The notes below the pieces were generated by a model that worked only from the letters and a program-made list of their open reading frames with translations, did no database searches and was not told where the DNA came from. From Lepidodermella squamata (taxonomy: Eukaryota; Animalia; Gastrotricha), in assembly GCA_047495785.1 (NCBI GenBank), contig JBLDXI010000032.1, positions 2,604,001-2,668,000 of the forward strand: a stretch of DNA of 64,000 nt, written 5' to 3'. Both the position numbers and the translations under genes were made by a program. Below, one piece after another: positions 643 to 37,912 of the stretch (position 1 is its first letter; every line of letters starts with the position of its first letter).

Positions 643-927
<285 letters not shown>

Positions 928-1913
928 CTAAGTAGAAGTCGTACATCTAGCAAATACTGATTTCTGAGGCATTAGCAAAAAATAACGTGGAATCAATCAT
1001 GAGTCACAATTAATGTACCTTACATGCACGTATTTCAACGTTACAACGCTGCAAAAAAACAAGCTGGAATCTGAGCACTGAAATGCACACTACTAGATGA
1101 ATGGAAAGACATCACCTCATAAGTATTATACATACTAGTAAAGAGTAAAATCAAGGTAAATAAGAGGGAGTTGCTTCCATGAATATAGCAGTCAGATAAA
1201 TGAAAAGAAGAGCAAGTGCGAGCCACTGCAATACGAATTTCGCGAGAATGAGTAACTTACAAGATAACTTACAATGAGCAAAATATAGCGTATGTTTTAT
1301 AAGATTATGAGACAAGGCGGAAACTAGTGACATTAAGTGACTTTCGTATATCTGCAAGCGCCTAAGAACATTAATTACTTGGGTGGCAATCTTAGTTTCC
1401 CTTCAAGTGTGTACAATTTACTGCCCGTTATTTTAAAGATGTTTTCGAGCATGCGCCGCGATTTAAGCTCATTCAAGTTAAGATGCAATAACTGGAGAGC
1501 TAACTAAACATCGTATGATCTAACCTAGTCGTATGGCATAACATATCATAAGCACCAAATCAATAAGATGCGATAACTAATATACGATGCGTTTCGATCA
1601 CTATGCTGTGCCGAAGTGATCAGCTGTGCATGAGCAGAAACAGACAGCGGAAAATTTCATTGAAGTTAACGCTAGCCTACGAACTGAACAGTGGTTTGCA
1701 GGGGTATAGGAAGCACAGGGAAGTTTTCAGCTAACAGATGGTTGGCGGGACGTTCAGTAACATCTCCAGCCCCATGGACTGAAGTTAAAGACGCTGCCGT
1801 TGCCTGGCAGCAAAGAATAATTAATTAAAATTGGGTAACAAAACATGAGTATAATATGATTTCGATTATTATTTAATTTACACAGCAATTAACTTGCCGC
1901 ATCTAATTTATTT

Positions 1914-1978
1914 ATGTGGGTTGTGCGTTGTGCGGTTATGCGTTTGTGCGTTTGTGCGTTGTGCGTTGTGCGTTGTGC
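1914..1978 (+). repeat. Imperfect (TTGTGCG)n tandem repeat
   Basis: ttgtgcgttgtgcggttatgcgtttgtgcgtttgtgcgttgtgcgttgtgcgttgtgc. Confidence 0.85.
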
Positions 1979-3387
1979 CGCAGCGGCGCTTATGGTCTTC
2001 GCCTGGCCGGTCAACATGGTGTTACTTTGCGTTTTGCCTGCCTGGCTTCACCCTTCAGCCGTTCGATACCCCGAAATCACCCTCGCGGGAGGACCAACAG
2101 GTCTTCGAAGAACTTATTCGAGAGCCGACGAAGATCTGGCAGAAGAAAGTCCGTGAACCGAATGGTACTGGTCCGCCGGCTGTTGCCTACCATGCCTACC
2201 TTCTCAAGCTGCTGGTTCAATATATCCTGCACCCGCCTGGCGAGGCAGCATCTCCCTTCGGCAGCTTGCGCGATCCCACCGCTTAGTTCGCTCTGGGACA
2301 TGGTGACAACTAATCTCAAATCTCAACTAATGTTCAAATTCAAGCTAGTACCAAACGACATGGCTATGAGATGACGTGTAATGTCTTTGGAAAACCGGCG
2401 AGTCTCTCATCGCTTCGCGACATTACCTGTTGGAACCGCCACCTCTGTCCGCCGCGGTATTACGGAAAATTTTCTGCCGGTTTCACGCCCGTAATTATCA
2501 AGAATCCGAAAAAATCTGTAATGCCGTGTCCATTTTTGAGGCGGCAGGTCTGAATTTCAAATAATAACAATAATAATGCAAAACTGATCAAAAGTGCTTT
2601 GTTGGTTCCTGTGATATATTTGAACAAATGTAAGCTCGTGCATGGTCTTGGGAATAGGATCGGATTGCTGATAATTTTTGGCATGTCATCTTTACTGTTG
2701 AAGAATACCATAGGGATCATATCTATGAAATTGTCTTGGCGGAAACGTTCATCGTAAATCATTTTTTGTCTTGTCCGATGTCTGTTTTTTCTTATTTGGA
2801 ACACAATGAATTTTTGTTGCGTATTTGGGAAGACCGGCGGCCACTTCTAGCTGTTAAAACCCTAGACTTTTTTGCTGTGTAACCTTTTAGCGTGGTGGGC
2901 CCATAATGCACTGAAGCTGTCCCGTTTTATCATCTGACAAGCTTCAATCCTACTTTTTTTAGGCAATGCTAACGGTGGGAATGAATTGTGATAAAAATGC
3001 ATTTGCTATTAATGTAACGTGTGGCCTTATTTCGGACATTTTCAGCTTTCGGCTCTGAATGGAAATGTCTTTCGAATAGTGGTACATATCGTTGAATAAC
3101 TCGGATTTGAGGCTGTTTAAATCAGTGTTTAGGTTCAAAATCATCGATTCATATTCATTGATCGATGTTCATCCATCAAAATCGAAAGATACGCCTTAAA
3201 GATGCAAAACGCAGTCGGTCAAAACGGCGGTGGAAAAAGCAGAAAATAGCGCGATTATAAACTATTTTAGAGGAAAAAATTATCAGAAAATGCGTCGGGG
3301 AGGAACGTTCAACATCTGTGAATTTGACCATAGTATGAGAATTCGAAAGATCATAAAGAATCTAATTGCCTTATGAATTACTTACAC

Positions 3388-3411
3388 CATGAGACGTAGC
3401 TGCGTCTCATG
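3388..3411. mobile_element. 24-bp palindrome flanked by a perfect 8-bp direct repeat (minimal DNA-transposon remnant)
   Basis: ACTTACAC (3380-3387) - CATGAGACGTAGCTGCGTCTCATG - ACTTACAC (3412-3419). Confidence 0.65.
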
Positions 3412-4133
3412 ACTTACACGAACTCGATAGCTCTGCGCGGACGGCGCTGTTCTGGGTTCAGAGCATAATTACCTAAGCATTGAGGGCTTCTTCATTTATT
3501 TTTTTAACAGTTTTTTCTCAATCAAATTTGAGCTGCGCAGCTAAAAATATTCACATCAGGTCGTCGGAAGTGACCAATTTGCGAGCTACGCGAACAAAGC
3601 GAATAAATGGATTCGAATGACGTCATGACATGAAGTCAATCATGGCGCATCTTCCGGCGCGAATGTCCCTGAAAAACACGTTTTGACCGAAATTTTAATA
3701 TTATTTTGAACGCTGCCAATACATTTATTCGAATAACAAAACAATGAATTTATTGCGGCTACATGACAAACATGAATTTGTTTTATGATTATTGGGACAG
3801 ATGACATATCTGAACCGGACGAGCCTTCTCTCTGAAGTACTTGATTGTCCATTTCGAGTAATTCGGTCGTGACAATAAAAACTCGGACGCCTGATTTCTA
3901 GGCCATCTTACTTTTTTCTCACCGCCGCTCAGTGCAGTTGTACATTGTACCATTATTCGCAAGGCCATTTTTTGCAACGCCCAGTGACCTAATTTTCAAA
4001 AACTGTTATCAAATCGCGAGAACGACTGAGTTTTTTGTATCTTCGAAAAAAATGCGTACGGTGGTGAACAAATAAATCCCTCCTCCACGAGTCTGAAAAA
4101 TTGAAAGCGATTTTTCATCATAAATTTATTAAA

Positions 4134-5579
4134 ATGCCTCGTAAACCTATTACCGAGGAAGAAAAACAGAAACGCATCCAGCTGTGCCGCGTAAGAAAAT
4201 TCTATAACCTATGTTTCAGGTATCAATGTTGTTTATGTAAATATAGGTCTGCGATATTCCTGTAAAACGTAAGGCGAAGTACCATCCGCATACATGTTCG
4301 GCGTGCCAGAAATATTTCAGCCGAAATTATCATCTACGATCGACTTTGACTTGCAACGGCGGAAATTTGGACTGCCCAGTAACTAGTAAGGACCGAGCCA
4401 ATTGCCGTCGCTGCCGTTTGGAAAAATGTATAAAAGCTGGGCTGCGCAGTAAATTTTTCATTCATATTATTCGTTACCGCAAAATTTTCCCTTTAGGTAA
4501 GCTTGATAAGCTTGGTTCCAGTACTGGGAGCTGCGAGTCCGCTTCATCGAATTGCAGCGATTCAACAATCGGCGAGGCGATAGTTATGAGCCCAGTGTCT
4601 GATCAGCAATCAGCAAATGAAATAACAGCTGAGGTAGAGGGCCTCCTTAAAACCGCGCTTCAATCTTTCACACAATTAATTGACCTTGAATTTGTGAGTT
4701 CATCATCACATTGCCAGTTTTTTCTTTGAATTTTCGAATTTTTTGTCGCTACAGCTGCCATTGAAGGATTATCATGGACCTATCACCTCGGAAAGTCTCA
4801 AAGCGGTGATGACGGATCATTTGCGTCGAATCAACTTGGCTGGCTCAGATTTTGTCGATAATTTCACAGGCAAAAATAAAAAAATGAATGATGAGGATAA
4901 TTTAATGATCATTCATAATTTTGTTATAGATTATTTCGGCTTGAAAGAGGAAGAGGAGAAATCGATTCTTGACAGCAGTATGGTGGCCATTACTTGCCTG
5001 TTTAGCGCCCTGTCCTCGAATGATGACAAGCATCAAATCAGCCAGGATTTATTATCGTATTTTGAGAAACTTCGACCCGGTCTTCAGGTGAGCTTTTCAT
5101 TTCCATAGACATCCTGATAAAATTTGGATATAGGAAACCAATCGACTTGAAACTGCGTTAGCGGAGCTGTTCGAAGAATGGAACCCAACGTTTTTAGAAA
5201 TCTCTCTTTTGCTTCTCTTCCTTACTTTCAACAGTTAGTATTTTTCAAGTTCAATAAATTTATTAATAATTTAATCGTAACAGAAAGTGTTGTTTCTATG
5301 AACTCTAAAATGGCAAATATTCGGAAAATGTGTGAATCGGCCCTTGAGCTAGTTGACGCCAAGCAGAAAGCTGAAGATGGAACCGGCTGCTCGTCTTACC
5401 TGGGATTGGCGCTGATTATAATCGACGCAATAATGGCGTCCCTACGAGTTAATTTTCCAGGGTCCCAACGCGATGACATTGATTCAAACTCATCTAATTT
5501 AACTTTCGAACAAATTTACAACATGTTGATGTGTGATGTGCAAACATATGAATCGAACGTGTCTCTCGGTGAAGAATGA
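4134..5579 (+). CDS. Divergent nuclear hormone receptor (C4 zinc-finger DBD plus degenerate LBD-like region); exons approx. 4134-4190, 4247-4448, 4497-4693, 4755-4869, 4930-5087, 5133-5232, 5285-5579
   Basis: Spliced DBD CRVCDIPVKRKAKYHPHTCSACQKYFSR...CNGGNLDCPVTSKDRANCRRCRLEKCIKAGL; ~50-60 nt introns keep the frame. Confidence 0.8.
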
Positions 5580-6874
5580 TGATGCTATAATTTACTTTGC
5601 TTAGCTCGTTCTAGCTCGGATGAGATTCATTGTGCAGTGCAAGCTTAAATTTGCTGTATATAAATTCAATGTCCCAAGTTTTTAGGCTCCGCTTTGTTGA
5701 CAGATCTTCGAATAAAATGCCCCATAAATCTGCGTTATAATCTTCACCTATGATTTTTATCGCTGAAAAATCTCAATATTTCCAGCCTAATTTTACCGTA
5801 AGTTACAATATCACAGGGGCAATGAAGTGCTTTTATATGTTTTTTTATATGCTCTGAAGTTTGTACCGAGCAATTGAGGTCAGTTATCAGCAATGTCCCC
5901 GACTTGGCTCCGTAGCCGTCTCGAATGGGAACTGTTGGCTCCGCTATTAATAGCGGTAGTTGGTGATGACTTGCATAGCTAAATTTATAAAACAGACGTT
6001 GCGTCGCGTTCCAGCATAGGAGTTTTTGTTCCGTGGATGGATACGAAACTGATGATTTCCATTCAATGATCCGATGTAGACGGCCAAATTTACTAAATTT
6101 ATTCATGTTAAAAGTATAACTGAGACAAAAAGTTGTTCATATTTTGAGGCCGGTTCGATATGCTCTTTTCATTGATCTCTTGTCGGATTTGATAAATTAG
6201 TCCAAGCTACTGCAAGCTCAATAGCGCCACAAAAAGCAAAAAGCTTGCCGGGTAATTCATTGAAATCAAGTTCAACAAGTTCAATTCGAAGTTCAAAGTC
6301 CAAATGACCGTTAACAAGTGAAAAGCGGGGTTTGGCGAACGTTTTGATTTTCCAACGTCAATGAACGAGGAGCCGAACAATATCGACGGATTAATCAAAT
6401 GCCTAAAAAATAGAATCATCCAGAAGAACTTCTAGCAAGGGCCTACGGAGACCCTGAGTTTAGCAGCAATGGTGCTAATATGATGATGATTCCAGCTAAG
6501 CTGGTGCGTATGGGGGATGCCCTGATAGTGAACCCGATTGACCTGCGTGACAGGCTGGACATAAAGCTCCCGGGAAACTGAGGGTGATGTGCGACTAAGG
6601 TGGCCAAACACCACACATTCATGGCAAATTTAGGTTTTCCCGCTTTAATTATCACCGAAATTTGACGTACTGACTGTTTGTTTTTTTGCTGATTTCAGTT
6701 GGCCCCTCAGATGTCAGCTCAATGAAAAATATCATGCAAATTTTATCACGCTACACGCTACAGTTATGGTTAAAAATCGCTTTTTTGAATTTGTTGGTTA
6801 CCCTGCTTGCAAGGTGTTGTTGCTGCTTTTTGAGGTTGGCATTGGGAGGTTTAGGTGTTTGAGGTCATTCCGTG

Positions 6875-24455: not shown

Positions 24456-26505
24456 ATGAGAATTTTTGTGTTTGTTTTGGCGGCGTTTCTTTTTGCGAGC
24501 TGTTTCGCGGAGGAACCCGTGAAAGCTGAGGAGAAACCGTCCGAGGTTAAAGGTAAATCATCTCCTTTATTATTATATCTCGATTTTTTAATTTAAATTT
24601 TTCAGCCGAGGAAACCAAGGAAAACAAAAAAGATGTCCCACCTGCTGTGAAATGTAAGTCAAATAATGAAGTTAACCATTTTTCCCGAATCATCTTCTTT
24701 TGTTACAAAATTTCCAGCTGACGAAGGAAAACCAAAAGAGCAGCAAGTAGAGGCTAAAGAAGAGAAAAAGGAGGTTAAGGAAGAGCCGGCTAAGGAAACC
24801 AAGACCAAAGAGCCTGCGAAGGGTAAGACCCAGCAGGATGAGGCGGGTAAAGGTAAAGTCAAACAGCAAGGCAAGCAGCAACAAGAGAAGGCCAAGGAAC
24901 AGGGAAAGCAGGGTAAGGGCAAACAGCAGCAAGGCAAAGAGCAAGTTGGGAAGCAAGAAAAAGTCAAAGCCGAAACTAAAGAGCCAGTGAAAGAACAGGG
25001 CAAACAACAGCAAGGCAAAGAACAGACCGAGGCTAAGACCCAAAAGCAAGGCAAGGTTAAGGCGGAGGAGAAGGTTCAAAAGGCTCCCAAAGAGCAAGCG
25101 AAGAAAGAAAAAATCCCAACTGAAGGTCAGGTCAAAGCAACCGAGACTGCTGAACCAGTTAAGGAGCAGGGTAAGGCTAAAGCAAAGGCCCAGAAACCTG
25201 GAAAAGCTCAGGTAGAAGAGCCGGCTAAGGAGCAAGCAAAAGAGGAACCCGTTGTCGATAAGAAGGCTAAGAAACAAGCCGAACCAGTCAAGGAAAAGAA
25301 AGTTAAGGCTGCTGCTGCTGAAGAAAAAGTAGCTGAGACAGAAACCAAGACTCAAAAGACTGGTAAGCAGGGTCAGAAGAAAACTGAGAAGCCTGTTGAA
25401 GAGGTGAAGCAAGAAAAGACGCAAGGCAAGGTAAAGAATGCCAAAGTCGAAGAAGCTGAACCAGTTAAGGAGGCTGCTCAGCAGAAGAAACAGAAGAAAG
25501 TTAAGGCACAGAAAGCCGAACCTGTTGAAGAGCCGGTTCAAGAAGAACAAGTCCAGGAACAGGAACCTGTTGCTGAGGCTGTTGAGGAAAAGCCGCAGCT
25601 GACTCCGGCTGCTAAATGTACGTCCCTAACTGGACAGCTTGCGAATAATTATCCTGTTTTGCATATGTTTCATTGTAACTTCATTTTCAGTTAACGAAAT
25701 CTTCCGCTTGCGCATGAAGCATGATGTTAAAGAATCAGTTGGTATCTTGAAGAAGCAAACCGACCTCAACAAAGCCAAGAGCTTGGTTGATAAGGCTCTT
25801 CAGACTGTTCTTGCTGTAAGTTAATCAGTTGAATGCAAAGCAAAGCCTAAAATGCGTTGTTTAAAGGATATTAAACGTTTGCAAGAAGAGCAGTTGTTGA
25901 AGCCACCAGCTAACCCGGACGCCCTGGCTGCTGGTACCATTTCGGATGCGGAAATCGATGCCTACGTGAACTTGGCCACCAATCTGCTCGTTTTTTCAAA
26001 CGCCGTTTTGTACCAACCCGACCTTTCTCGAGCCTATTTGAAGACCCAAGCCAGTGGTGAAAACGCAACAGCTGCCATCGCCACCGTTCAATGGGCTGCT
26101 TCGTTCTGCCGCGAAAACGGACTTTTCGCTAACCAGCCTAAGGCTAATGAAATCGTCAACTTGGTAAAAGATAAATTTTGAAAACAATTGGTTTTTCATC
26201 TTTTGCCGTTTTTTAAGATGGAGCAGGAGCTTGAACTGGTTCCGCGGGATCCCAACTATCAAAATCCGTATGCTCACCGTCATAAAGTTGTACGTGCTTG
26301 CTAATTAAAAGCTTGAAATGACGAAATATTGCGCTCAGCATGACTCAAGGTGACGAAATCAAACTTATTTTCTGTATTTAAACAGGACCAAGCTCGTCAA
26401 GAATTCGAAAAAAGGCAGCGCGAACTCGAAGAACAAAAGCAAAAAAGCGGCAAACTGAAAAAGCCTCTGAAGCAGAAATCGGCCAAGACTAAGGAAGAGT
26501 TGTAG
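24456..26505 (+). CDS. CCDC134: CCDC134-like ER-lumenal protein with long K/E/Q-rich insert; exons 24456-24552, 24606-24653, 24718-25617, 25691-25815, 25867-26163, 26218-26289, 26386-26505
   Basis: Signal peptide MRIFVFVLAAFLFASCFA; VQWAASFCRENGLF..IVNLMEQELELVPRDPNYQNPY resembles CCDC134 (WGISFCNQTGVF..LMAQELG..NFQNPF); ends KEEL. Confidence 0.78.
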
Positions 26506-26898
26506 CTCTTCTATTAGTTACTTTCAATTATAGCTCTGATTCATCTTCCTGCGATTAGCAAATGAATTATGCACGTTAATATAACCTCTCGCAATGATTA
26601 TTGCAGCCAACACTGTTGACTCATCTGCTTTCAAAACAACTGTGTATGTGTGTAGAATAAGTTTTAAAGCGTATTGTTAAATTGGTGATCATCGAACGTT
26701 GACAATGTGATTTTTGATTCTTTTTTGTGAACTTTTATTATTAAAGACAGCCGAAATTGAATTATTTTGTTTCTCAATTTATAGGAATAGTATTTATATT
26801 TTATCAAAATTGGTCCAAATTTATTTCGGTTGCTACTAAGACCGTCGCTGATTTTGCCTGTCCGAAGTTTCGCTTGTAATCTCATTAAAAGAGCTAAA

Positions 26899-29121: not shown

Positions 29122-29390
29122 ATGCAAATAGCGCGATGAATCATGTGAGTGTGTGTGTGCTATTTTTAGAACTATGCCCGGCCAATGAGCGCGCGAGTTA
29201 CGTCAGCCAATGAGTGCGCGGCGTAATGTGTATTCACGGTTGCTTTCGTTCGCCTCAAAAGCGCGGGCTCGCCAGCCAATCAGCGTGCGCCGTAGACGCC
29301 GTCTAATAATTTGTGCTTGTGTGTGTTTACTGCATGAATACATCACGCAGTACTTGGTCTATTTGCAGCAGGAGAGCCCAGTATATTTCT
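29122..29390 (+). promoter_or_regulatory. H3.3 promoter: octamer, CRE-like site and three CCAAT boxes
   Basis: ATGCAAAT 29122-29129; GCCAAT at 29181, 29206 and 29275; TACGTCA 29199-29205; probable 5' UTR intron 29472-29537. Confidence 0.6.
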
Positions 29391-29425
29391 ACGTCGCTTG
29401 CATCATCGTGTTTTACTATTGCTAG

Positions 29426-30040
<615 letters not shown>

Positions 30041-31201
30041 AGCAAAGACGTGAGAAGCAGCTAAAAAAATTAACAATTTTTAGGTGTCATCATTCTCGCG
30101 TTTTTTTCTTGCTCGCTCGTTATTTCTCGCTCGGCTCCTTTGTCATTACTGTGCGTTTTTTGTGTCGTCGTTCGTTGTAAAGATACAAACATCTAGCTTA
30201 AAAACAAACAAACCTTGTACTACTTTTCGATGATGATGATAATGATGGTGATGTGATGGCAAACCAAATTTATGAAATTTTTCGTTTCTAGTTTGTTGTC
30301 ATGCAAACAATACACACGCATCTTCATTTTATTAATTTGTCTCACGGCAGACTCGCTTCGATGACGTTCATCCTGTTTTAAAAATTGTGGGTGGCGTAGC
30401 TCAACCTCCTTTTCTGATAGATTTTTTCCAGGTACAAATCTGTTTGGAGACAAGTATGGACGCTTGGTTAGTTGGAAAGAGTGTGCTGCGTGTGTCTTGG
30501 GAGAAATGCGATGATTTGACTTCTTTTGACAGGATTGTATCTTCTCATTGTTTTTGATAATGCAATATGATGGTCTCTTGTAAATACAGATGTATGGAAA
30601 AATACACTGAATAAATGCACGAAAAGATCGAGAATGCGTTTAGTTTGAGCTCGTTACATCATGTCTTTTCCGCCCCCAGGTTTTAGCTGTTCAATTACAG
30701 GCTTCGTTAACACGGCCATCGTTAGTAACGATTTGTGTCACTTTCAATCGCAAAAGACAGTTAAAAACAACCGTTTTCTCAATCACTTGATTAGGTGTCT
30801 ACTTTCGAAGTCATTCGATGCGTTTCTCGCCACTGAACAATTACTATTGAAGTTTATGTTTTTGTGTGTGAGATAATCGGGTAGTCGTCAAAGGAACTGC
30901 GCTCCTGTCATCATCTGCTACTACTATCATATCATTTATCTGTCTGTCATCTGATGAAATTTTAGTACAAAACCGCCACTCTTAATCAAGCTGTTTCGTC
31001 TCTGGAAAGTCAATGAGTTTTTTTTAGACAAATAAAACAATTCTTACTGCATCATAACACCGTGTTTTGTTTCCGTAAAAGTCAGAACATATTTACATAT
31101 TTTTGGAATTTTTATTTTGCGTCTTGCAGCACTCTACAGATATCACGGAACTCTCGCACCTTTCTTTGCCATAAATTTCAATTTGCAAATACAATCTACG
31201 T

Positions 31202-31651
31202 TCAAAAGAAGAAGCCGAGGATCTTGCCACCGACGTGCTTCCGCCTGGCTTCCTCGTGGTCCATAATACCGGCCGACGTGGTTAACACGATGTAGCCGAA
31301 CTGACGAGACGGCAGCAGGTTGGTGGTCCATTGTTCCATATCGTGAACCTTGATGTCGAATCGAGGGGCGATCACACCGCACTAAAACAGCGCACATATA
31401 CAATTATTTTGAAAATATAAAAAGGGTTCAAAACTTACCTTGTTGATGCGACCATTGAGGTTTACGATGATCTTTCCGGCACGGTGGTCGTCGACAATTT
31501 CGAACTCACCAATGTAACCGTGCTTCATCATGACGGTGAGGAACTTAACAATAACCTTGGAAGAGGGACGGATAAGGACCTGACGCTTGCCACGCTTTTC
31601 AGCGTTGCAAATGCTCTTCAGAGCATCAGCCAACACGTTCATGCGCACCAT
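31202..31651 (-). CDS. RPS15A: 40S ribosomal protein S15a (uS8); exons 31651-31439 and 31381-31202, 130 aa
   Basis: [33 protein letters not shown]...GGKILGFFF. Confidence 0.98.
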
Positions 31652-31707
31652 TATTTATCTTAGTGAAATAGTGGCTAAATCACTGAAAAAAACGAAAACG
31701 TTAATAA

Positions 31708-32520
31708 TCAAGTCGAATTCAAATATTTTTCGCTCGGAGTAAACCAATGAACAGCAGTGTCGTTAAAAGATTCAGGCCAGGGACATAAGGTCAGAGGTAA
31801 ATCTTTTTCGATAGAGAAACGCTGAGCCTTAAGAAGATGTTGAAACGTTTGAAAGTTGTTTATATTTATTTCAGGCACCAAGTGATCGCTCATTACCGAA
31901 AAACTATTTCCGACGATCACAATCGAAGCTAACTTCTGTAGGCACCAATTTTTCGCAAGAAATAACTCATAGAGATCTTTATCGCAATGAACGGCAAAGA
32001 GGATAAGAGCCGTCGATCCAAAATCATTCAATGACAGCGAGGCTTCGGCATTCAATACAACGGCGCCAAGTTTATCAATTATCAATTCGTCGGAAGGAGC
32101 AAAAACGGGATCATAGGCGGTTAGAGTAATAGCAACAGAAGATTCCTCTGGATCGAGGATTGACTTGCTCAGCTGACGAGCTACTGCGAACTGATGCCGA
32201 GAAGACAGTGAATGACATAAAGATCCGACTCCAAGACATCTGATTTCGACCGCAGTTATAATTTTACCCCGGCTCTTAATATCATTCAAAGCCATTCTGA
32301 TGTGTGAACATAGAAACAAATACCAAGGCGACTCAGTAATTTCCATTCGCAGGATCTGATCACAGTATCGAGTACAAAGCCCTTCATCTATGTGAGAATC
32401 TAGCGTAACAGATCCAGCCCCATTTTCAGCCATAACTCCAGATGCTATATGTTGAACCGAACGTGCGGCAAACTTCTTTCTGGCTTTACCGCGGACGAGA
32501 ACAAATCCGTCAGCTTCCAT
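31708..32520 (-). CDS. SRRD: SRR1-like protein, intronless, 270 aa
   Basis: N-terminal GFVLVRGK, CLGVGS..SRHQFA, YDPVF, HCDKDLYE..NW, IVGNSF, FNDTAVHWF. Confidence 0.88.
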   Translation of the reverse strand: MEADGFVLVRGKARKKFAARSVQHIASGVMAENGAGSVTLDSHIDEGLCTRYCDQILRMEITESPWYLFLCSHIRMALNDIKSRGKIITAVEIRCLGVGSLCHSLSSRHQFAVARQLSKSILDPEESSVAITLTAYDPVFAPSDELIIDKLGAVVLNAEASLSLNDFGSTALILFAVHCDKDLYELFLAKNWCLQKLASIVIVGNSFSVMSDHLVPEININNFQTFQHLLKAQRFSIEKDLPLTLCPWPESFNDTAVHWFTPSEKYLNST

Positions 32521-32634
32521 TTAACCGGCGACTATGGCGAATCCTAGAATAGCAGCAAAACCAGATAAACGAGCAAGATGGATGGAGAAGATTGGGTTTC
32601 ACGTGAATACCAAATATACCAAGATGACCCTCAC

Positions 32635-32695
32635 CGCATGAGAGTAGGAGAGAAAGAGACAAAAGGGAAAGGAAGCTGCGAAAAAGGGGAAGGGT
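32635..32695 (-). promoter_or_regulatory. Pyrimidine-rich TCT/5'TOP-like leader exon ending in donor GTGAG at 32634
   Basis: Minus strand reads CCCTTCCCCTTTTTCGCAGCTTCCTTTCCCTTTTGTCTCTTTCTCTCCTACTCTCATGCG|GTGAGG. Confidence 0.55.
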
Positions 32696-33023
32696 GACTC
32701 GAAGAAAAGAGTCTCGTGTTCAGCTGAGCCGTGTGACGGAGTTTCACGACTCCGCGTTGCGCTTAAAAATACGTCGATTTTTTTTTATCACTGCATATTT
32801 TTAATAAATCTTTCAAAACGTTGCAATTAAGCATTTTATTTATTATCGAAAATTTTCATTTCCGAAATGACGAAAAAAGGAGGTCAGTCACGTGATAGGG
32901 GCTGTTTTTTTGCCTTACGGGATCTACCTTTTGCTAAAGGCTTCTATTTTTTACACCTCTCTTGTCGTTTTGTGGTGTGAAGTGATAATTACGAAACCAA
33001 TAACATTTTAGAAGTATGATGCT

Positions 33024-36000
33024 ATGAATGGTACAGAAAACTCAGATGCTGCGGCGGAGGAGAAGCCGCAACACTTGAAGTAAGTGAATGGTTTACCGCA
33101 AAGCTGATGCAGCAATATTTTTACTACATATTTTTGGCACCGAGCCATCTCCATTTCGGTTAAATTCTCTAGGTCCCACATTTTTTTATTATTTCCGAAT
33201 CAGGACATTGAATAATGGGACATAGTTACGGCAAATAGGCTTGTTGGCCTTTTTATTGGTTCCCCTTTACCGTGAAAATCTACCTGTTTACCTGAACCTT
33301 CCGTACCTAGAGATTTTATGATGTTTTATGATATGTGTAATAATTCGTTCAACATTAAAGTGTGTAAACTATCGTCATCGGCATAATAAATATGATATTT
33401 TAAGCCAATTGCTGCTATTAATTCAGGGTTTGGGTATTTTATACACTACTCGAAACATTAGGCTTCAGCCGTCGCCGTTTAAAAGATGCTAGTGAAGCTG
33501 TTCGCGATTCTCTCACATTCGTTTAATGTTATCGTTATTGCTGCCATCTCGACTGATCATAAATACGCGTGCTTTTCAATTTAATGTACCCATAACTGTG
33601 GTAAAATTTGATACACGTTAAAGGAAACGACAACTAGTAATATTCATATTCCAAATGTTCAATACCGAGAGCATTTCATGTTGCATAAAATCTAGCCCGG
33701 CTTTCGAGTTATTCTTTATTTTGTGGGAAATTGTTTGCAATTTTTTCATGTCCCTTTTCATTACATTTACAAGTTGCTTTACAATATCCTATTGCTTTCC
33801 AGGTATTTGCAAGAATTTCGCACGACACAATGTCAACTATTTCTGCAGCATAAATGCACCCAGCATCGACCCTTCACGTGTTTCAACTGGCATTTTGCTA
33901 ATCAGCGCCGCCGAAGACCAATTCAAAAGAAGGATGGTACTTTCAATTACAACCCGGATGTATATTGTCCTAAATATAACGAGAATACCGGAATTTGTGC
34001 GGACGGTGACGAGTAAGTTTTATATTAACATAAATCTGTGTGATTAGACAATTAATGCGTGGAATGACCAATTTCATTAGCAAAATCCCAGTTATGAATG
34101 GCGTATTCAAGTAGTTTTTTTTCTGATGTGGTTACTAATTAGCGGCGTCTCCAGCCACGTGATGGCTACGCATTGCATAATTTAGTTCCATTTCATAACC
34201 CATAACCCAATCTGGCTGTCAACATAATTGGATATGCTGTATCCACCCATTGTTGCGCATGATGTCTCGGTTCTGACTGCTCAAGTTTACTTGAATTTAT
34301 CATTAAGTGATTTTAGTCCGATAGAATTTGATATTTTACGTAGCAAAGCATAATTCATGCTTTTTCTTAGTTGCCAATTTGTCCATCGTACGGCGGGCGA
34401 TACGGAGCGGCGATATCATCCGCGCTACTACAAAACGGCTACATGCGTTCACGAAACCGATGCTGAAAACCATTGCGTAAAAAACGGTCCTCATTGTGCT
34501 TTCGCTCATTCAGCAAAAGATTTGCGACAACCTGTGTATGATGCCCGCGAGAAAGCCGAAAAAGCAGCCTCTGGAACTCCCGGTGGACCAGGCCCGATGT
34601 TGCTTGACGGCATCTTATTAGCGGCTGGCGTCGGCAATGGAAATAACGGCTTGAGCAGTTCAATCAGCGGCAAATCTGTCAAGGGAGATCGTCACGGTGA
34701 TAAAGAAGATAAAGACAAGGAGGTGGTCGTCGACGATATGCGATGGAACGACCTGCAGTATGTGCTCATTAACTACAAAACTGAGTTGTGTCGAAAGCCG
34801 CCGCGTCAATGTCGGCAGGGTTACGCGTGTCCGATGTACCACAACAACAAGGACAGAAGGAGATCACCCAAAAAGTGCAAGTACCGCTCGACACCTTGTC
34901 CCAACGTCAAACACGGCGACGAATGGGGTGATCCGAGCCACTGCGAACTCGGCGACAACTGCGCGTATTGCCACACCCGAACGGAGCAGCAATTCCACGC
35001 CGAAGTGTACAAGTCGACGAAATGTAATGACGTGCTGCAGACGGGTCGTTGCCCTCGTGGGCCATTCTGCGCCTTCGCTCACAACGACCAAGAGCTGAGC
35101 ATGGACCGAACCGCGGCGATTACTGCGGAAGAAGTCGGCTCCCAGGCACCGCCAATGTCAGCCGGACCTTATTCAGCCGCCGTTTCCGTCTTCGGTAGCC
35201 AATTCGATGTTGGCCAAACGCCACCTGCTGGTAAAATTTCACCTGAGGGTAGCACTAGCGGCTTGAGCCTGCGAAGCAGCAGTATGTCTGAGACTCTGGC
35301 TTCGCTTGAATCGTCATACGTCGCAGCTCTGCAACACCAGCAAATGCAGCAGCATCGCAATTCGAGCGGCTCGAACCAAGTTCCGGGTTTCCATCGCTTT
35401 TCATCCGGTTCGTCGGCTGTTTCGCCGGGTGTGCCGATCGGGCATGGCGGTCGTAACCCTGATATGGCTGCGGCAGTTCACGCGCTTTCTTCTAGCTGGA
35501 ACGCTCTTTCGTTTTTGTCGTCGCTCAATAACCAGACGGCTGATGGTTCGTCCGTGTCGTCCGGCTTTGGCGGCGGTGTGCCCGACGATGGATCGCCTCC
35601 TGATGTTGTGCAATCACTGAGTCTATCACAGGTGCCTTCGGGCATGTCCGGGCTGTGGGGCAACTCGAACCGCCGAGCTGTCGCCATAGCTTCGAGACAA
35701 AAGCTCGGGCGGTCGATGTCGCTCAACGCCCCGCTCGGACCACTTTCGCCGCGCTCATCTGACTTCGGCCCATCCGGTAATGGCATCAACAGCAGCGGCG
35801 GCATCCCTCTGTTGGTACCTAATGAAGAGCCCGATGATTTCGATTTGACCTCGATCGACAAAGAATTGCTAAGTGCAAGCAGCACTGGTCAACAGTCGAC
35901 TGCAGATCGCCTCGGTTTGAGTTCTAGCCGAATGACCCACGACAGCGGCGATAGTACGGATAGCATCAATGGACCTTCAAATATTAATGGTAATTTTTTA

Positions 36001-37912
36001 ATTTCCCTATTTTTTTCTTTGCTTAGTTCAAGCATGTGATTGTCTTCACAAATCCTTGGTTCACGTGTGAACTAATTCTTTTTTTATCTTAGTAACTGCC
36101 CCTCATTTATCTATCGGAAGTCAACGGCTATTTTTAACTGTGATAACGAAGTAATATTGTAGGAGGGGGCGTGTTTTAAGTTGCTCTACTGTGGCGTATC
36201 ACCCTTGCCAATAATTCTGTAGGAAACGAGTTCATTATTCATTATAAACGCCCGATCCAAATTTTGCGACAATTAACTGCGAGCAAGATAAATCATGAAG
36301 AGATATTAACATTCCGGCTTTGCCATGTGAGATCAACTGAAAATTTCCTGGGTTTGTTATCATCTCTGAAGGAAAAAGGAAAGTAGAACTATTAAATAAT
36401 CAAAAACGGGAACAAGCACTGGCGGGTATGATAAAAAAAATTGAAATGGGGCTGAAAAATTACCTCAATTTATAAGACCTTATCATTGTTGAATCACAAT
36501 CGCGCTTCTCGCAATATTTGATCACACCTAATAATATTTTTAACAAGAGTCAATAATTATCAACAGTACACGCGTTTTAACGTCGAAAAATGACTTAATT
36601 AGGTAATTAGCGGAAGTGTGCCGACGTGCTCAGACACGTGCTTTTAAAAAGAGTCTAAATATACTGAACTAATTGAATCAATTTTATTTTCGTTTTTTTT
36701 CAATTAGGCTCATCAGCTGTCTGGGGCACTCCGCCACATTCTGCTGCAATGGTAGCTGCCACCCTTGGAAGCACAAATAGCCTGTCGGGAAGTATGTCCG
36801 GTGGACCAGGAGGTCTTTCCGCCGTAGCTGCGGCGCTTGGGGTCACTGATAATGCCGTGTTCTTGCCGTCAAACAACTCGAACAGCACCCCAAATGGCAA
36901 CCAGATGCCACTGTCCCACGGCCTGTCCCTGCCAGCCGAAGCTAGCATTCTTCATGCCTTTGGCGCCCTGCAAGAGCAGCAACGCCAACAGCGCCAATTT
37001 CAACACCAACGCAGCGAAAACTGGCTTGGTCAAGTCGAAAACGCCTCTATGGGGATGTCTGACATGCACATGGACAACCACCATCCGCACCACCGAATAC
37101 GTTCACTGAGCTCTTGCGTCTATCCCACCAGTGGTAACTCGGGTTTCAATAGCGCTCGTAGCGAAGGGGAGGACTTGACTACATTTCTACGCCGGTCTGG
37201 TCTTATTGACGCTATGGTAATATTTCTCGCAGAAAAAATACCGGTTCATTTTTAGTCTCCCGTGTTTTTTAAGAATGTCGATCAACAGCAGAACTACGAG
37301 CGCGAGATAAACAAACTGCGTCATCAGAACGCGCGTTTGCTTGTTCAGCTGAAGGAAGTCGGCGGTGACGCTGCAGTTGCGGGTGCAGCCCTAGGCTCGA
37401 CCAACGACGTAAATCTCGTTGCTAGCCAGCTTGTCGATATCAGGCAGTCACTTTTGGTGAGTCATCAGCGATTAATTTTGGATAAATTAAATTTTAAGCT
37501 GGATTTTTTAATTTGAAATCAATACTGAATATTTTATTTCCAGGATAATTTGACGACTGTGAATGCGCTGCTGCTCACTCATATGGCCTGTTCCGCGTGT
37601 GGCAACGGCATTGGGGTGGAGCAGCCAACTTGCGATAACGCCACCCTGCTCGGCAAGTGCGCCCACGCTCTTTGCGGCGGCTGCAATGCTAAACTGCTGC
37701 CTTGTCCGATGTGCACGGCGCACGGCCAGGCCGGTAAGAACTCGCTGAACGGTCGCATGACCTCGAAAACCGCCATGGATCTGCGCGCAGCTGCCACCGC
37801 CGCGGCAACTGTTGCCCTCGAGTCGACATCGCGCCGCCGTCGCCTTTCCGCTGGCTCGAAAGAACAGCTCCTGCTGCAGCAGCAGCAAATCCTGCTTCAA
37901 CAACAGTTGATG

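Follow-up and report, generated by a model that had tools for sequence, protein, structure and literature searches.

How does an mRNA obtain its 5′ end when the gene upstream leaves no room for a promoter? This question arises in the window, the whole 64-kb stretch of DNA that was analyzed here, where an SRR1-domain gene (SRRD) is followed on the same strand by the ribosomal protein gene RPS15A (uS8), and 56 nt extend from the SRRD stop codon to the RPS15A ATG. From the stop codon to an acceptor AG there are only 23 nt, so a promoter of RPS15A cannot be fitted between the genes, as a preliminary description of this DNA had remarked. That description proposed a cis arrangement, in which a pyrimidine-rich leader exon with its 3′ end at 32635 has two possible partners: splicing to 32543 yields a dicistronic SRRD-RPS15A mRNA, and splicing to 31682 removes SRRD as an intron. 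Its coordinates for SRRD, RPS15A, the acceptors, the GTGAG donor, and the upstream ATG were all correct when checked against the sequence.

The two genes and their junction

The RPS15A ATG is at 31651, and both exons match PF00410 in Pfam. The exons were searched one by one, and identity to named RPS15A proteins is 85-89% with the exons counted separately. When homologues of the exon-1 ORF were searched, no protein of the organism itself was among the hits; the best value was 93% on exon 1 and at most 89% over both exons.

The SRRD ORF runs uninterrupted from an ATG at 32520 to a TGA at 31710-31708 on the minus strand. Its residues 91-259 match the Pfam SRR1 domain (PF07985) with an E value of 9e-29 and 100.9 bits, against a gathering cut-off of 24. 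Neither an exact look-up in public assemblies nor a word-based homologue search returned a match to the SRRD protein. A canonical AATAAA is missing from the window near the end of SRRD, where just degenerate hexamers (AUUAAC, AAUAUU) occur. The features of the locus are collected in Table 1.

Table 1 Positions of the features of the SRRD-RPS15A locus in the window
Feature	Position	Strand	Basis
RPS15A 3′ UTR; AATAAA at 31116-31111; poly(A) addition at ~31092	31092..31201	-	poly(T) loose ends before 31092 in X1 and X6; sequence
RPS15A exon 2, coding part, 59 codons + stop	31202..31381	-	PF00410; translation
RPS15A intron, 57 nt, GT..AG	31382..31438	-	skipped in contigs of X1, X2, X3, and X6
RPS15A exon 1, coding part, 71 codons	31439..31651	-	PF00410; cDNA joint 31381/31439; translation
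RPS15A 5′ UTR 3′ of the leader, 31 nt	31652..31682	-	cDNA contigs; sequence
Trans-splice acceptor AG of RPS15A, use shown	31683..31684	-	contig ends in X1, X2, X3, and X6; leader branch contigs
Gap from SRRD stop to acceptor AG, 23 nt; branch-point-like TTAAC and polypyrimidine tract	31685..31707	-	sequence
Intronless SRR1-domain (SRRD-like) CDS, 270 aa + stop	31708..32520	-	PF07985; relative P0121; low-depth X1 cDNA contigs
Candidate acceptor AG (attctAG), 23 nt 5′ of SRRD ATG	32544..32545	-	sequence
Donor-like GTGAG, putative	32630..32634	-	sequence
Pyrimidine-rich tract, 87% C+T; candidate TCT-type start region or polypyrimidine tract	32640..32709	-	window composition scan
TCACGTGAC, E-box-like, ~370 nt 5′ of SRRD ATG; possible promoter element	32887..32895	-	single occurrence in window

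After the SRRD stop codon, the gap reads ttattaacgttttcgtttttttc and is directly followed by the AG at 31684/31683; the branch-point-like TTAAC is at 31704-31700. Because this element and the polypyrimidine tract take up the gap, the precursor of RPS15A mRNA must start inside or upstream of the SRRD ORF. RNA across the junction was sought in the four runs described below, where no contig spans it and zero contigs lie on 31692-31769, contigs being a form of data that drops rare forms.

Short gaps are not general in this region. In a neighboring operon-like run of genes on one strand, a gap of ~300 nt with several U-rich AG acceptors (26504-26830, plus strand) separates the stop codon of a CCDC134-like gene from the start of HARS, and compared with that gap the 23-nt SRRD-RPS15A junction is the extreme case locally.

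An H3.3-like histone gene lies at 29150-31011 on the plus strand (ATG at 29574, one intron of ~56 nt, stop at 30040), with three CCAAT boxes (gccaatgag/cagccaatcag) 250-400 nt upstream. It is covered by cDNA contigs over 30500-31011 at a depth of ~660-6,000, declining toward RPS15A, and an AATAAA is at 30611. Its 3′ UTR thus seems to be long, reaching, from the opposite strand, to within ~80 nt of the RPS15A poly(A) site.

RPS15A 5′ ends and the source of the leader

Contigs, rather than raw reads, of four public runs (X1, X2, X3, and X6, from three studies) were aligned to 30500-33800. X1 and X6 are cDNA, as poly(T)/poly(A) ends occur at 31092 and the 57-nt intron is removed. Contig ends in X1 carry the string AAGCAGTGGTATCAACGCAGAGT, which we take to be a SMART cDNA oligo. 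In all four runs, RPS15A contigs end at 31684/31683. The second acceptor of the preliminary description is thus real and is used at precisely the position foreseen, 31682 being the first nucleotide of the exon.

The letters that precede this exon start are carried by X6, in which two short branch contigs share a 30-nt overlap with the main RPS15A contig and then continue into non-genomic letters. In the first of these (depth 151), the mRNA sense reads ATCTGCGAATTTGATTTGTGTCTA, then AG, then the exon; this first leader is ATCTGCGAATTTGATTTGTGTCTAAG, ~26 nt long. The second 5′ extension (depth 113 in X6) reads GCGATTGAATATTAAA; the next 7 nt are like the genomic pyrimidine tract apart from 2 mismatches, and AG comes after them. 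It is also present in X1, a separate study.

The first leader is absent from the 64-kb window even when 3 mismatches are allowed, and contig depth over the proposed cis exon is zero; the pyrimidine leader exon ending at 32635 is therefore not the 5′ end that is observed on RPS15A mRNA. The string of the second extension is absent from the window with 2-3 mismatches allowed, and from the two leader-bearing contigs L004 and L005 (see below) with 3 allowed. A literature search found the leader strings in no published paper. An upstream ORF had also been predicted, and its arithmetic is right, since the ATG at 32639 is present and, upon splicing to 31682, opens a frame of 10 codons that closes 3 nt ahead of the RPS15A ATG; however, it is irrelevant to RPS15A, the leader of which differs, and the leader-bearing 5′ UTR does not contain any ATG.

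Metagenome contigs were scanned for exact matches to 20 nt of the first leader, and two contigs, L004 and L005, were obtained. L005 reads ...GTGTCTAAG up to the end of the leader and GTATGTAT after it. Here the 26-nt leader directly abuts a GT donor (GTATGT), after which a short hairpin follows, and a 5S rRNA gene is located ~200 nt downstream of the leader, followed by the 3′ end of LSU rRNA. L004 is an rDNA unit with SSU rRNA, 5S rRNA, and the LSU rRNA 3′ end, and its spacer contains four leader-plus-donor copies.

The leader thus heads an mRNA transcribed from one locus while, at a different locus, it is an exon with its own splice donor, and this combination defines SL trans-splicing. RPS15A mRNA receives its leader in this way at the exon start 31682, from an SL-RNA-like gene in the rDNA spacer beside 5S rRNA. 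SL addition at 31682 had been named beforehand as the outcome that speaks against splicing in cis, and it does occur, the leader and its donor being elsewhere beside 5S rRNA. No published record of SL trans-splicing in this animal lineage was found in a literature search.

The SL-RNA-like gene of L005 extends over 456-812 on the minus strand, ~200 nt 5′ of the 5S rRNA gene, and the LSU rRNA 3′ end is on the opposite strand. In its arrangement, such linkage of SL and 5S is like that of nematodes and other trans-splicing lineages. The four copies of L004 are arranged in tandem between 5S and SSU rRNA (2440-2590, minus strand), as variants of ATCTGCGAATTTGATTTGTGTCTAAG joined to GTATGT with the first 6-8 nt of the intron; they have no full SL RNA body between them, which is odd for SL genes. 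The SL RNA bodies fold no better than shuffled sequences (z of -1.4 and -0.1). A search for Sm sites in the intron part gave just weak candidates, AACCUUGG in L005 and AUUUUUUUCGG in L004, and the SL-RNA-like sequences had no match in Rfam.

A far-upstream exon in cis was also tried as the source of the leader and rejected: the 32 kb upstream in the window lack the leader, introns are ~57 nt long, and the leader has its own donor beside 5S rRNA.

SRRD transcripts, upstream DNA, and a second genome

SRRD RNA is represented only by X1 contigs, which cover 31770-32369 at a depth of ~30-43. Contig depth in X1, a poor measure, is ~43 on SRRD versus ~50,000 on RPS15A, and it is zero over 32387-33163 upstream, despite the RPS15A depth.

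One X1 contig on SRRD (32251-32369, minus strand) has 30 unaligned letters 5′ of 32369, within the ORF, where AG is absent. The next in-frame Met past 32369 is codon 59 (32348), from which the whole SRR1 domain is still encoded. The 30-letter extension may mark an internal RNA 5′ end or may be a cDNA oligo. Farther upstream of SRRD, low-depth X1 contigs have 'opposite strands' joints at 33181/33285 and 33230/33336 (within 33181-33336), which might be either a cDNA artefact of the hairpin type or RNA transcribed from an inverted repeat.

The region between these joints and SRRD contains several signals. On either strand of the 64-kb window, the tract at 32640-32709 is the sole 70-nt stretch to attain 87% pyrimidine, a richness beyond chance. 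The lone GTGAG that follows is unremarkable, as three GT[AG]AG pentamers occur in the 1-kb upstream region. Besides the attctAG acceptor, a strong acceptor is present at 32688/32687. Candidate 5′ ends of SRRD mRNA are a leader at 32543, a leader at 32688/32687, or a cis splice 32635>32543. The element TCGGAAAT has three copies close to SRRD and is not enriched in the window (5 found versus 4 expected), and no Rfam families were found in the window.

Conservation was assessed by an exhaustive HMMER search with SRRD. It gave a single close relative, the full-length P0121 (244 aa, 41% identity, E value of 3e-42), the remaining matches being at most 35% identical. A second search starting from P0121 gave no further close relatives, so conservation here refers to one second genome. 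P0121 is encoded on the metagenome scaffold L001, on which the gene order is the same as in the window: an unkempt-like CCCH gene, a small Cys-rich gene, SRRD, RPS15A, and histone H3.

The five-gene synteny block was noted at 33723-36039 (plus strand) in the window and at 3098-5400 in L001. Within it, the exon of the Cys-rich gene (33830-33980 in the window) is well conserved in DNA, and the gene caller of L001 seemingly called the wrong strand.

The junction of L001 is built much to the same measure. The SRRD stop codon (6733-6735) is directly followed by AATAAA, the AG at 6762/6763 comes after 26 nt, and the RPS15A ATG is at 6795. The AATAAA is 21 nt before the acceptor AG, a spacing that would fit cleavage at the acceptor. 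The sequence 'attctag' occurs as an acceptor 5′ of the SRRD ATG in both genomes, 15 nt before the ATG in L001, and the 9-mer TCACGTGAC is also upstream of SRRD in L001 at a comparable distance, which might weakly suggest a promoter element.

One short intron interrupts RPS15A in each of the two genomes, after codon 71 (71/72) in the window (31382-31438) but inside codon 45 in L001 (6928-6986), which means that within the lineage an intron was lost and another gained, or that the intron slid. The non-coding DNA upstream of SRRD does not align between the window and L001. Because the intron positions differ and the upstream DNA is unalignable, the two genomes are judged to be far apart. The SRRD-RPS15A linkage and the tight junction have persisted through considerable divergence. 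Synteny in a relative, which had been suggested as a check, thus gave a divided answer: the SRRD-RPS15A junction and the attctag are kept in L001, whereas the pyrimidine leader and the GTGAG donor are not. In two other lineages, SRR1-domain genes are not adjacent to RPS15A, and among these genomes the linkage is lineage-specific.

A probable operon and its alternatives

SRRD and RPS15A share traits with SL-resolved operons, being same-strand neighbors with a very short gap, of which the downstream mRNA is leader-spliced just 5′ of its ATG. Because the RPS15A 5′ ends are trans-spliced with a leader from outside the window, the donor exon of which is found elsewhere, because the linkage is conserved and lineage-specific, and because precedents exist, we consider that SRRD and RPS15A are probably the two members of an operon that SL trans-splicing resolves and whose intercistronic region is close to nil.

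The downstream part of this scheme is observed: a leader of ~26 nt, encoded elsewhere, is joined to the exon starting at 31682, and the mRNA continues through the 31-nt UTR and the two coding exons to poly(A) at ~31092. For the rest, a promoter would lie upstream of SRRD, within 32545 to ~33700 and perhaps at the pyrimidine tract, and one precursor would carry both SRRD and RPS15A. Cleavage and polyadenylation of SRRD mRNA would take place at the acceptor or immediately ahead of it. This 3′-end formation would compete with trans-splicing, each precursor yielding either SRRD mRNA or RPS15A mRNA, with RPS15A heavily favored.

A more specific form of the operon can be drawn, though it is improbable as a whole. 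The SRRD gene would lie in the outron of an RPS15A gene driven by a pyrimidine (TCT-like) promoter of the ribosomal protein type 1 kb upstream, the ~1000:1 output would be set post-transcriptionally by polyadenylation versus trans-splicing at one shared site, and the arrangement would have been kept across distant relatives.

Several observations on the contigs and the sequence speak against an operon: no contig spans the junction or shows either end of SRRD mRNA, 30 unaligned letters begin inside the SRRD ORF, and the window lacks an AATAAA at the SRRD stop. Another is the large depth gap between SRRD and RPS15A, for which a strong promoter serving RPS15A alone is no worse an explanation than a shared promoter. 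A promoter serving RPS15A alone would be inside the SRRD CDS, its short outron would be removed by SL trans-splicing, and SRRD would be transcribed separately and weakly from upstream, the two genes thus overlapping without co-transcription; in a variant, a 'hybrid operon', both routes would be present. We regard a promoter within SRRD as the strongest competitor, albeit an unlikely one. Apart from the ~thousand-fold difference in contig depth, it can draw on the SRRD-region contig with its 30-letter non-genomic 5′ extension at 32369 within the ORF, and trans-splicing erases the information on a start site. Internal promoters are established in C. elegans operons. In the hybrid operons of that animal, the downstream gene can be far stronger than its upstream partner and still be trans-spliced, much as at this locus; however, the internal promoter is in an enlarged intercistronic region there, whereas here it would sit inside the upstream CDS. 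When the SRRD ORFs of the window and L001 were compared, no nucleotide block was conserved beyond coding constraint; identity at third codon positions is 0.45 over the whole ORF, with 0.67 in a run of 9 codons at its 3′ end, a weak indication from two sequences. Zero contigs on 31692-31769, where the outron is expected, also count against an internal promoter, though weakly as the data are contigs only. Finally, the tight spacing and the AATAAA located 21 nt before the acceptor in L001 look like coupled processing.

A trace of a junction-spanning transcript might be seen in the second 5′ extension, if GCGATTGAATATTAAA were unspliced RNA of a divergent allele reading back into the SRRD stop region. 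Its core TTGAATATTAAA resembles TTGATTATTAAC at 31711-31700 of the window, and the contig is aligned through the polypyrimidine tract with just 2 mismatches. However, outside this extension X6 agrees with the window at 100% identity over >850 nt, and in both of two independent studies the extension, like the first leader, breaks off after ~25 nt. Its start, GCGA-TTGA, is like the GCGAATTTGA of the first leader, and an A/T-rich likeness of such size easily arises by chance. A divergent allele is accordingly a doubtful source, and the second extension is more likely a leader.

That a leader exon ending at 32635 is spliced in cis to 32543 or 31682 is highly improbable, and for the bulk of RPS15A mRNA it is contradicted, as this mRNA bears leaders absent from the window, neither predicted joint (32635>32543 or 32635>31682) is seen in contigs of any of the four runs, the region 32387-33163 has no contig depth although RPS15A is covered very deeply, and leader and donor are not conserved in L001. 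In its favor, no tract of the window is more extreme in pyrimidine content than the one preceding GTGAG, the first acceptor is conserved in kind in L001, and a splice 32635>32543 for SRRD alone would be compatible with zero contig coverage there.

The operon has precedents in animals. Ciona, Oikopleura, and C. elegans provide documented cases of operons that lack intercistronic DNA and of ribosomal protein genes as operon members (PMC1488885; PMC7986045). Operons lacking an intercistronic region are the majority in Ciona and a minority, called 'SL1-type', in C. elegans (PMC1488885).

Ciona intestinalis is like the present locus in that, of two same-strand neighbors, the downstream one is SL trans-spliced, at an acceptor lying directly against the end of its partner (PMC1488885). 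That the same type of leader serves operonic genes in Ciona can be counted as a further likeness (PMC1488885). In Ciona, however, the upstream poly(A) site has been mapped to the acceptor AG and dicistronic cDNAs have been found, neither of which was seen in the contigs here. Ribosomal protein genes of Ciona are mostly not trans-spliced and are rarely in operons (PMC1488885), whereas the downstream gene here is a ribosomal protein gene. Lineage and leader also differ, and two leader-like 5′ ends occur here.

The arrangement of the SL1-type operons of C. elegans is also that of L001, while the window is without canonical AATAAA at the corresponding place. A difference is that nothing here points to labor being divided between leaders. 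Of its ribosomal protein genes, ~40% are operon-associated (PMC1488885). In Oikopleura, where many ribosomal protein genes are in operons, intercistronic regions are 23-30 nt (PMC1488885). This is the size found here (23-26 nt from stop to AG), but the Oikopleura distance is counted from the poly(A) site and ours from the stop codon, so that the true intercistronic region here is shorter or nil.

The locus is thus probably an SL-resolved operon of a known animal kind and not a new splicing switch. It would be a clear-cut and conserved case of an operon with hardly any DNA between its genes. In annotation, standard gene models would fuse SRRD with RPS15A or invent an impossible promoter between them. 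The authors of PMC1488885 have argued that a single precursor may undergo either 3′-end formation of the upstream mRNA or trans-splicing of the downstream one, but not both. With a weakly expressed housekeeping gene upstream and a highly expressed ribosomal protein gene downstream, the SRRD-RPS15A pair would be a good test of that exclusivity.
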